Shown: piece by piece, positions 49,001 through 52,000 of the stretch
Layout of the letters: each line of letters starts with the position of its first letter
Numbering within the stretch: position 1 is the stretch's first letter
NCBI GenBank assembly: GCA_002269645.1
Contig: NIVC01000089.1
Coordinates: forward strand, 62,001-126,000
Source of the DNA: Macrostomum lignano
Lineage: Eukaryota
Reading direction: 5' to 3'
DNA: 64,000 nt
The notes under the pieces: model-generated
The model's database searches: none
What the model saw: the letters and a program-made list of their open reading frames with translations, nothing else
What the model was told of the DNA's origin: nothing
Made by a program: the position numbers and the translations under genes

Positions 49001-52000
49001 AACTGACTGGTTTTTGTCCGCGATCCAAAAACACAAAGCATAAGTTTCCATGTAATAACTGCAGATTTTACCGTTGGAGCTAGGATAATTTGTGCAAAGG
49101 CAAGCAGAAAAGTTTGTCAAACATGTGACTTCTTGATGCTAATCGTTAGAGGGACTCTCTTAATGAAGTGGGACGTACATAAAAATATCATAGGCACAGG
49201 GGAGGAGCCTGGATCTTTACCAATCAGGCGCTTGAACTGAGTCTTTAGGTATCCTCCGATATTCATCGAAGTGGTGGAGCAAAGAATAGTGTGATTAAAA
49301 ACCCAACTACAATCACTAACGTATAGCTGCAGTCCTTTGCTGCCAGCTTCCCAGATCCCACGGTCTTGGAAGCAGGCAAAATTAAGAAGGAAGTTTTCAA
49401 TCCAATGAGCAACGTTTTCCGTTTGCGTGATCTCTAAGATGGCTTCTATGAGTGGTACAGCAACAATGTTGCTTCCCTTCCTATCAGAAATAACTGCACT
49501 GCAAAACAGGACATTGGCTGGAACAACCGCAGATTGCTGAATAAGGCCTCCTGACATACATGCGCAACTTTGGGAATCACCCGGCCGTTTCTATTGGCAA
49601 CACATACATGTAAGTCGCTATTGGCTGAGAGCAGTCACGTGACTACTATTCCATCCAATAGCGACTTACGTGTGTGTTGCCAATAGAAACGGCCGAGTGA
49701 ATCCCAAGGTTGCGCCCAAGCATGCTCCTGTAGCATCAAGGTGGATAGGAGTCATCAGATCTTTTCTTAAAACACTTTGTAGAAGTTCCATCTGTTCGGT
49801 GCGATAGAGTGTAACAGATATGGGCGCTGCAGAGACATGCTGGATGAATCTAGCCACACCACGCTTGCTTCTCGGCATCGCGATTTGCCAATCAAGACGC
49901 TGATTCAGCACATCTCTCATCTTGTCGTTCTCTTTATCTTCTGACGACTGCACTCTGTGTATAGTCTGACATACAGCAGAAAGAGAACAACCTTTTTGTA
50001 AAAATTTGCTTACGTTTTGCTTGTAAATTTCAGTTGCACTAGCGCCGCGCTGCATTGCCTCTTCTTGAACAAAGGCGTGGGCCTCGGATGAGCCACGTTG
50101 CTACAGGTTACGTATGTTCTCCTTTGGGGTGGCAGCTTCATGACCTTCGTGCTCTCCTTGGCTCCTAAACGCAAGTGCAGCATCAGTTTTAACCGGAAGT
50201 TCGTCAAATACAAATATACTGGTAAAACTGCAGCAACAGCCACCCCCTTCAGCGCATTGTAATCGTAGCCAGTAAGCAGCAGCAGTTTTCCTTTTCTTGT
50301 AGGGCCTCAGCACCTGCTTGTCGATATGCACAGCGCAATGCTCACCACTTTCTGCAAGCAACAGTCGGACAACCTCCATTATCCATGAGGATTTCATGGC
50401 AATGCACTCCTTTCCATCCTTCACCTTCACCTCAGTGTGCCGCTTGAAAACGTTTGCTGGGATGCTGATCGACTGAGCCTGACATAGGGAAGACGAAAGA
50501 GAACCAAATAATATTACAAAAGTTTCAAGATTGAGTCGCAAAATCTAAATATACTAAATCTCTAAGGTTTGTTTGTATGCTTGTCCATAATGCTCTAGAG
50601 ATCGCAATTCTTTACCGATTTTCATCGCGTTTTTGCCAAAAGATTCAATATAATTGTACTAAAGTTACTTCACAAAAACAAAAGATTTTCTTAAGAATAG
50701 CAAATAAAATAGTTTTTTTAAATGAAAAGTAGTTGCAAAAAATGCTACGCTCATACATCCGCATACCAACCTCTGTGGCCGATAACTTTGTAGTCTCAAA
50801 GGCAGTGGATTGAGACTCGGGAGCAGCAGTTTCATTGGCACCAGACTCAGTCGTGGAATTGGTAGTTCCAGGAGTAGTAGCAAAGTCCATCAAATTCTAA
50901 GCTGCATTGCAATCAAAAGCATGGGAGGCAGCCGCTGAACCGGAAGCAGAGGCGCCAGCTGCGTTATCGCGTGGTCTGGTAGTTTCGGGAAGAAATGTAC
51001 ATGTATATTCCTTAAGTAATTTAAATAGGGCTTATTTTTGGCTTGAATGTATGAAAATTTATTTGTCTCGTTAGTAAAATTCGTTTAAAAATCTAATACT
51101 ATTGTAACTAAAAAATTCCCACAAATTCCATGTAGAGTTACAACAAGGTTATTTATAGTTAGTTATATATATAATAGCCACAAGAAAAAAGGAACGATGG
51201 TGTAGCATAGAAGTGTTATAATTTCGAGGTAAGATTTTCAACAAAAGGCAAGCATATGGAATAAAGATATTTAGGCTGCAGGATACCAATTGGCACTGAG
51301 ACGGCCGGGGATTCCCATTTATTTTTAAGTAACAACACTTGCCTTCCTCGTAGCAAGCTTTTAGAATCTAGGTAACTTGACTTACTTGGGTGTGTGCCAT
51401 TTTAATTCACAAATGGCCTTGTACAAAACTTCTCTATTATACATCGATAGTAAATTTTGATTGATGATGGCTGTATTGGTCACATCATTAGGAGGATTTA
51501 ATAAATTGAATTTATCAGCCAGAATTGTAGTAAGGGGTACATCACACCTCTTGCACATTTCTTCAAGAATCTTATTTTCGGCGTCATCAAGACAGTCAGA
51601 CAGCAAAATCAAAGATGCCATGCCTCCTTTAAGAAAAGCATAGACCATGTGTAAGCCAAAAAAGACCACATTTTCAACACAAGCAGCAAGCAAGGCAGCC
51701 AATAAGACGTCCAAATACTCGTCGTTAAATGTACCTGGTGCAAACATATCTTGAGGAAATCAAAAAATTGACCAGAATTAAATTGTTGCTTGAAGAGGGC
51801 TAAATGGCTGGAATGGCTAAAATGAATGCATATATGAGCCAATTTATTAACAAGCATAGTAAAATTATGAAATAATTCAATAACAAAAAATTCAGGAAGT
51901 TTTAAAAATTAGAATAGCCTGCTCATAAAGTCAAAAGCATCTGAATTTATACATATGTTCACTACTTGGCAGATTATATTATGCAAATAGCTGAATATAT

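Follow-up and report, generated by a model that had tools for sequence, protein, structure and literature searches.

A decayed Rehavkus-type transposon of Macrostomum lignano with a possible L7Ae/eS12/Gadd45-like coding segment upstream of its transposase

We examined a 64,000-nucleotide stretch of the Macrostomum lignano genome (assembly GCA_002269645.1, contig NIVC01000089.1, positions 62,001 to 126,000; hereafter the window, whose own numbering is used throughout). It holds a decayed Rehavkus-type DNA transposon of the Mutator superfamily, and upstream of the transposase lies an open reading frame (ORF) with a weak but specific similarity to the L7Ae/L30e/S12e/Gadd45 family. An initial annotation, made from the sequence alone, had proposed that this segment is an RNA-binding module fused to the transposase. 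Our analysis tentatively favors the fusion, in which the segment may have been a spliced N-terminal add-on of the transposase, and makes canonical kink-turn RNA binding less likely.

Results

A Rehavkus-type transposon bounded by a perfect target site duplication

The initial annotation placed the L7Ae-like segment inside an element bounded by a target site duplication (TSD). Both statements hold. An identical 10-mer, with a 10/10 match between the two flanks as read from the sequence, abuts either end of the element, and the ORF at 51385-51747 falls within these limits. The termini are imperfectly inverted over ~25-30 bp (left ACGTGAATAACTTACACCGCATGTTATTC versus reverse complement of right TGAGTATAACATACACCGCATATTATTAC). 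Inside both ends, inverted subterminal arrays of a 12-bp unit span 130-300 bp, and the coding capacity lies on the minus strand throughout. The main features are as follows.

43650-43659: left TSD, TGCCAAAAAG, a 10-mer abutting the element end
43660-52894, minus strand: whole Rehavkus-type (Mutator-superfamily) DNA transposon, 9235 bp, a decayed copy recognized by its TSD, its termini and the match of its DDE domain to a hidden Markov model (HMM)
43676-43791: left (3') subterminal 12-bp array, outer part, from repeat analysis
44387-44547: left (3') subterminal 12-bp array, inner part, separated from the outer part by a nested insertion
48604-50478, minus strand: transposase, with a DNA-binding zinc finger of WRKY-like type and, after it, the Rehavkus DDE domain, identified by homology and HMM, frame interrupted
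50771-50975, minus strand: putative exon 2, a Ser/Thr/Ala-rich linker frame of 52% GC, with an in-frame TAG at 50899-50897 and an ATG at 50890-50888
51385-51747, minus strand: L7Ae/eS12/Gadd45-like ORF of 121 codons, ATG at 51747-51745 and TAA at 51384-51382, with a GTAAGT donor starting at 51385
52578-52880: right (5') subterminal array, ~25 copies of the 12-bp unit ATGCGGAATAAC in opposite orientation to the left arrays
52895-52904: right TSD, the identical 10-mer TGCCAAAAAG abutting the other end

The element had been called Mutator-like, which is correct; more exactly, it belongs to the Rehavkus type. An HMM built from the six published Rehavkus DDE-domain sequences (supplement of PMC6446971) aligns end to end with the window transposase (positions 1-305 of 305; 77.7-78.2 bits, E=6e-26), and single-sequence phmmer searches with the published domains gave E-values down to 1.4e-11. 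The Zisupton/KDZ family, first considered on account of the Ulp1 and zinc-finger modules, was abandoned because of this end-to-end alignment. Rehavkus was grouped with the Mutator-like elements (MULEs) by Yuan and Wessler (2011), as a citing passage of PMC6446971 has it.

We scanned 1.84 billion representative proteins in full with HMMER, taking the conceptual fusion protein of the initial annotation as query, and recovered 76 relatives. All of them align to the transposase part (query positions 163-766), and the Rehavkus HMM scores them at up to 220 bits. Their identity to the window transposase is only 20-40%. The best two, P0001 (40% identity, E=3e-114) and P0002 (37%), come from the same M. 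lignano assembly, where P0001 is encoded at locus L001 and the P0002 type at loci L002 and L003. With the closest relative in the protein collections at only 40% identity, no transcript-derived protein of the window family is present there.

The transposase itself occupies a near-continuous minus-strand frame from 50544 to 47731, followed, in a frame-by-frame translation, by exons at 47333-47061, 46683-46516, 46460-46074 and 45784-45545. An AlphaFold model of P0001, computed on a 75-sequence alignment, is confident (mean predicted local distance difference test score, pLDDT, of 81). Its N-terminal four-stranded domain finds plant WRKY domains as top Foldseek matches (7z0r, 7z0u and 5w3x), with probabilities of 0.99-1.00 and target-normalized template modeling scores of 0.58-0.65, but with E-values of only 0.04-0.15. 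The Cys/His pattern of this domain is kept in the window transposase. Behind the second catalytic Asp, almost all sequences of the 75-relative alignment share a C-x2-H motif, for which the window reads LCTSH. Pfam gave no convincing match for the window transposase pieces, a profile of the 75 relatives had no match among PDB sequences, and a word-indexed homologue search with the concatenated transposase as query found nothing.

One relative in the transposase alignment matches Pfam PWP3A-B_C (E=1e-19), the domain found at the C-terminus of PWWP domain-containing DNA repair factor 3A/B. This match hints at kinship between the vertebrate domain and Rehavkus-type transposases, from one of which it may even derive.

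A 121-codon frame with weak but specific likeness to L7Ae-family proteins

The peptide that the initial annotation gave for 51386-51747 of the minus strand is exact, and it lies within the ATG-initiated 121-codon frame. We examined whether the frame follows the L7Ae/L30e/S12e/Gadd45 pattern that had been ascribed to it. HMMER searches show that the top Pfam match of the ORF is indeed that family, PF01248 (E=2e-4, 21.4 bits; residues 19-75 on profile positions 7-64 of 95), although the score stays 0.7 bits below the curated gathering cut-off of 22.1. Ten control scans, nine with shuffled forms of the ORF and one with the reversed form, reached at best E=0.023, with unrelated families. When the ORF was compared with PDB sequences by phmmer, the best 12 of 17 matches were all eS12 or eL8 and covered the same residues, with eS12 of Toxoplasma first (E=0.045) and eL8 of several yeasts next.

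The likeness between ORF and PF01248 is collinear over residues 15-82, comprising G-x-h-x-h-x-x-h-L, a hydrophobic strand, a D, the C-helix and vP. The ORF differs from the family in that the segment after the third strand is shortened, as read by eye from the peptide, and in its transposon context instead of a ribosomal or ribonucleoprotein gene. An NCBIfam scan of the ORF returned no match. A small, crude L7Ae profile of seven family members, which serves as a lead rather than a test, ranks the ORF second among 3001 sequences (3000 shuffles included), and hhalign of the ORF with this profile yields P=0.005. On balance, the ORF is probably a true L7Ae/eS12/Gadd45 homologue.

Proteins of the L7Ae family such as L7Ae and 15.5K contact the kink-turn (K-turn) through an N-E-x-x-K motif, and the Glu and Lys of the eS12 helix are part of it; both are present even in Gadd45. 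The phmmer alignment pairs glhEvaKal of the eS12 helix with glhMvyAfl of the ORF, in agreement with the small family profile, so that Glu and Lys are replaced by Met and Ala. Assuming a genuine L7Ae fold, the module is therefore unlikely to bind K-turns in the canonical way. Rfam, for its part, detects no snoRNA or K-turn RNA family in the element. The claim of an RNA-binding module is weakened on both counts. Since the eS12 Glu and Lys are replaced, the module would more likely have been a scaffold for protein contact or dimerization, similar to Gadd45, than a K-turn binder.

Proposed splicing of the L7Ae-like frame to the transposase

The segment had been predicted to join the transposase through a Ser/Thr/Ala-rich linker. 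All the junctions this requires can be read in the sequence, and they keep phase: AA|GTAAGT at 51386/51385, cag|A at 50975, GAG|GTTGGT at 50771/50770 and cag|GCT at 50478. The GC content of exon 2 contrasts with 30-32% in its flanks. In the transposase frame there is no ATG from the upstream stop (50547-50545) to the conserved finger, and the strong acceptor ttctctttcgtcttccctatgtcag|GCT at 50478 lies no more than one codon from the point where homology to P0001 starts. Thus, some upstream exon must supply the start codon. The L7Ae-like ORF opens with an ATG and closes at a consensus GTAAGT, which favors its fusion to the transposase, as does the occurrence of accessory domains N-terminal to the transposase in several relatives (OTU in P0067, UCH in P0065, PHD in P0012 and P0052).

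Based on these features, we propose the following scheme. The element is a Rehavkus-type cut-and-paste transposon, now dead, whose long gene encoded a WRKY-like finger, the DDE domain, an in-frame minisatellite, an Ulp1-like protease and a PHD finger. The lineage of the window element would have acquired a small coding segment related to L7Ae/eS12/Gadd45 between the 5' subterminal repeats and the transposase. This segment would form the first coding exon and provide the start codon; spliced via the Ser/Thr/Ala-rich linker exon to the WRKY-finger exon, it would become an N-terminal add-on of the transposase. Direct splicing of exon 1 to exon 3, as judged from the sequences by eye, is out of frame.

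Several features of the region weigh against this scheme. The splice path crosses the in-frame TAG at 50899-50897, and the second donor, GTTGGT, is weak. The L7Ae-like ORF has its own TAA, overlapping the GTAAGT, and an AATAAA at 51323, 60 nt downstream. Moreover, three codons past the TAG stands an ATG (50890-50888) at which translation of the transposase could begin, giving it a short Ser/Thr-rich leader in a way similar to the intact relative P0002. The predicted linkage is thus upheld as to the existence and phase of the junctions, whereas the TAG interrupts it and two other gene models fit. Among fusion, a stand-alone small protein and an unused cargo, we lean slightly to the fusion, as a possibility held tentatively.

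The stand-alone model is only slightly less probable than the fusion. According to it, the 121-codon ORF encodes a complete small L7Ae/eS12-like accessory protein, comparable to mudrB of MuDR, while the transposase starts at the ATG at 50890. This model accounts for the run of the ORF from ATG to its own TAA with the AATAAA beyond it, and it requires no nonsense mutation in the 5' region; 121 amino acids is the size of complete L7Ae, L30e or SNU13, and P0002 likewise opens with an ATG and a Ser/Ala/Gly-rich leader of ~45 amino acids before the finger. The TAA, however, says little either way because it sits within a perfect GTAAGT donor. The GC-rich, Ala/Ser-rich frame is open for 25 codons upstream of the TAG and resembles coding sequence cut by a CAG>TAG change, in a copy that carries other nonsense codons. 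In addition, the published Rehavkus elements have a single ORF (PMC6446971, Table 1).

No L7Ae-like segment in the relatives and collections searched

We searched for the segment in protein collections, in metagenomes and in the relatives. A word-indexed search of 5.8 billion proteins, the full HMMER scan of 1.84 billion proteins and a back-translated scan of JGI metagenome contigs yielded no homologue of the ORF, and an exact-sequence look-up placed the 121-residue peptide on no record. No further ORF-like sequence occurs in the window. None of the 76 transposase relatives has a similar stretch or a PF01248 match. At the M. lignano loci, no ORF-like sequence was found in the 4.6 kb upstream of the L001 transposase, nor in L002 and L003, where only ~70 nt separate the terminal repeat arrays from the transposase ATG, too little to accommodate an exon of this kind. 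For P0003, P0004 and P0005, the contigs of 1.5-2.9 kb are too short to include upstream exons. This lack of recurrence counts against the fusion scheme.

Arrival of the ORF by a later nested insertion finds no support, as a search for repeats in 50400-52600 revealed no nested-element boundary around it. Of the alternatives that the initial annotation had named, the absence from 76 relatives (20-40% identical) and three M. lignano loci favors an acquisition specific to the lineage. The annotation had held that the idea would fail if the segment were missing from other family members and matched an unrelated insertion or host pseudogene; of these, only an absence from relatives no closer than 40% identity was observed. 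The segment thus fits a lineage-specific add-on of uncertain expression, as far as the sequence comparisons go.

That the frame is open by chance within AT-rich, non-coding 5' sequence, with the L7Ae likeness a false positive, is an unlikely explanation. Apart from the score under the gathering threshold and the lack of homologues, it draws on the length of the frame, which is only marginally unusual for the AT-rich 2.1-kb region (Markov null, p ~0.04), and on hhalign, which gave only P=0.005 for the ORF against the small family profile. A single-sequence AlphaFold2 model of the ORF has a mean pLDDT of 41, is all-helical and provides no usable fold. Elsewhere in the element, the transposase gives a probably spurious match to the unrelated Pfam family N1221 with the same E-value as the match to PF01248. 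Furthermore, 64 kb in six frames was scanned initially, for which we roughly estimate ~0.07 expected matches per window at such a level. The sub-threshold score, the lack of homologues, the AlphaFold2 model and the N1221 match count against the fusion as well. On the other side, the match is to a family named beforehand, the leading PDB matches over the same residues come from independent members of it (Toxoplasma eS12 and yeast eL8), and the shuffled and reversed controls remain far from E=2e-4. The order of the L7Ae fold elements can apparently be followed by eye across all 121 residues. The ATG, the consensus donor, the strand and the GC content (0.378 versus 0.295 and 0.324 in the flanks) suit an exon.

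That the segment is a piece of a host gene, such as a divergent eS12/Gadd45-like paralogue, captured in Pack-MULE style and carried unused, is the least probable explanation: host-fragment capture is known for Mutator-superfamily elements, according to a passage of PMC6446971, and the segment is missing from every other Rehavkus relative examined, but the protein collections hold no parent gene or homologue, a recent capture from the conserved eS12 or eL8 genes would have left a higher identity to them, and what lies on the transposase strand is not a fragment but an entire domain from ATG to stop.

Accessory modules downstream of the DDE domain

The part of the gene that follows the DDE domain carries further modules.

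47731-48540, minus strand: acidic linker in the transposase frame, holding the minisatellite
47967-48259, minus strand: in-frame minisatellite, a 60-bp (20-residue) unit repeated 4.9 times
46074-47333, minus strand: Ulp1 (C48)-like protease exons at 47333-47061, 46683-46516 (His region, HFMLLYIN) and 46460-46074 (QQDGSSCG Cys box)
45545-45784, minus strand: C-terminal PHD finger exon, Pfam PF00628 (E=1.7e-5, 25.2 bits, cut-off 24), colinear with L001

The PHD finger is the only exon of the transposase gene that Pfam recognizes. The Ulp1 region of the window copy has no Pfam match; tblastx and tblastn revealed its exons by their colinear alignment with L001, P0014 and P0015, and the motifs were read from the translation. 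L001 is colinear with the window element across the minisatellite, the Ulp1-like exons and the PHD finger, which indicates that the layout finger-DDE-minisatellite-Ulp1-PHD is ancestral to the two.

In-frame minisatellites stand just after the DDE domain in three divergent elements (window 47967-48259, L001 6699-7674, L002 11985-12413). Their units are unrelated, with the 60 bp of the window facing 30 bp repeated 33 times in L001 and ~90 bp in L002. The position just after the DDE domain thus seems to be conserved in the family, and the sequence is not.

The relatives carry other accessory domains. P0038 combines Ulp1/C48 with a YqaJ nuclease and a PHD finger, and the UCH/USP domain of P0065 is N-terminal. 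By eye, a UCH-like C-terminal domain can also be recognized in P0012 and in L002 (13574-14089). Rehavkus transposases exchange accessory modules (Ulp1, UCH, OTU, YqaJ, PHD) on both sides of the catalytic core, a conclusion that is better supported than the L7Ae-like piece.

Comparison with known elements

Table 1 of PMC6446971 describes Rehavkus as having a PHD finger, a TSD of 9 bp and, close to the 3' end, a minisatellite. Like the Repbase entries Rehavkus-1_TC, Rehavkus-3_TC and Rehavkus-1_HR, the window element combines the DDE domain with a PHD finger, and it shares with them a minisatellite inside or near the 3' part and repeat-rich inverted ends. Its size of 9 kb falls within their 5-18 kb. 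The 10-bp TSD compares with a range of 9-10 bp for Rehavkus and with ~9 bp (8-11) for the Mutator superfamily. In contrast to the published elements, which come from arthropods and annelids, the host here is a flatworm, and an Ulp1-like protease lies between transposase and PHD finger; the extra 5' L7Ae-like ORF sets the window element apart from the other Rehavkus members examined. A flatworm Rehavkus element with an Ulp1-like protease adds a member to a known family.

The two M. lignano types, P0001/L001 and P0002/L002-L003, share their 40% and 37% identity with the window element over the WRKY finger and DDE domain. The termini of L002 and L003 begin with ACGT, as does the left end of the window element, and the TSDs of these two copies are 9 bp and 8 bp versus 10 bp in the window. 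The P0002 type differs from the window element in its terminal inverted repeats (2.4 kb in L002), in a protease of UCH type instead of Ulp1 type, and in an ATG placed right after the terminal repeats.

Plant KI-MULEs/Kaonashi and Pack-MULEs are Mutator elements with Ulp1 domains or captured host fragments. The window element resembles them in carrying non-transposase modules, including the Ulp1-like protease. It differs from them in its animal host and in having Ulp1 and PHD modules that are colinear with the transposase and conserved in relatives, and the L7Ae-like piece is unlike Pack-MULE cargo in that it comes without an identifiable parent gene.

In full-text literature searches, no transposase bearing an L7Ae, Ribosomal_L7Ae or Gadd45 domain came up; the sole paper linking L7Ae with transposases concerns IS110 and Nop5 and is unrelated. 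If the L7Ae-like piece is real and was expressed as part of the transposase, this would be the first case found of the fold on a eukaryotic cut-and-paste transposase, and a further member of a transposase family that swaps modules at both ends. It is doubtful, but conceivable, that a flatworm Rehavkus lineage recruited an eS12/Gadd45-like N-terminal module tying the WRKY-DDE-Ulp1-PHD transposase to a host partner; candidates for such a partner would be a ribosomal or nucleolar component, or the DNA-repair and demethylation partners of Gadd45 type. The evidence for the L7Ae-like piece comes from a single dead copy whose domain match stays below threshold. The practical value lies in the Rehavkus annotation and in a testable lead. 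The firmer picture from our data is that Rehavkus transposases are unusually modular, with de-SUMOylating and de-ubiquitinating proteases (Ulp1, UCH, OTU), a YqaJ nuclease and PHD fingers. This modularity may merit a study of its own.

Decay of the copy and nested insertions

At least three nonsense codons and two nested insertions disrupt this copy. Within the transposase frame, stops occur at 50103-50101 (TAG) and 49119-49117 (TGA), and the Ulp1-like exons fall in different frames. The copy is dead, and nothing functional remains. The two insertions are the following.

49562-49715: palindromic (hairpin or miniature inverted-repeat transposable element, MITE-like) insertion of 154 bp, breaking the transposase frame directly behind HLDATG, the motif of the first catalytic Asp
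43792-44386: nested MITE-like insertion of 595 bp with ends CCCTATTGG / CCTATAGGG, splitting the left 12-bp array

The 154-bp palindrome is near-perfect (86% self-complementary), and Rfam lists for it only sub-threshold matches to microRNA precursors (MIR851, 47.7 bits versus a gathering score of 90). The 595-bp insertion is flanked by the 8-bp duplication CC(A/G)TAAGT (CCATAAGT/CCGTAAGT), a length from which we presume a hAT-type element.

Surroundings of the element

A 236-residue ORF lies just outside the element, at 54022-54732 of the minus strand. Pfam has no significant match for it, and by eye its C-terminus looks like a degenerate hAT-family dimerization domain. Interspersed repeats at 1-337 and 41179-41494 of the window share 82% and 76% DNA identity with the flanks of the L002 element, where their counterparts lie at L002 4924-5259 and 2466-2799 (M. 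lignano contig NIVC01000139.1); like the M. lignano origin of the closest transposase relatives, they point to M. lignano or a near relative as host. A word-indexed search with the neighboring DEAD-box helicase exon gave only fragments of 50-74% identity, which did not bear on the species. Very many long tandem arrays, with units of ~20-40 bp, are found between GC-rich host exons.

1100-2600, 16500-17650, 22500-23300, 32000-34400, 36100-36800, 56500-59650 and 61600-63200: tandem arrays, units of ~20-40 bp
19389-19907: eIF2B-like host gene
28663-29115: NIF3-like host gene
58728-60698: DDX5-like helicase host gene

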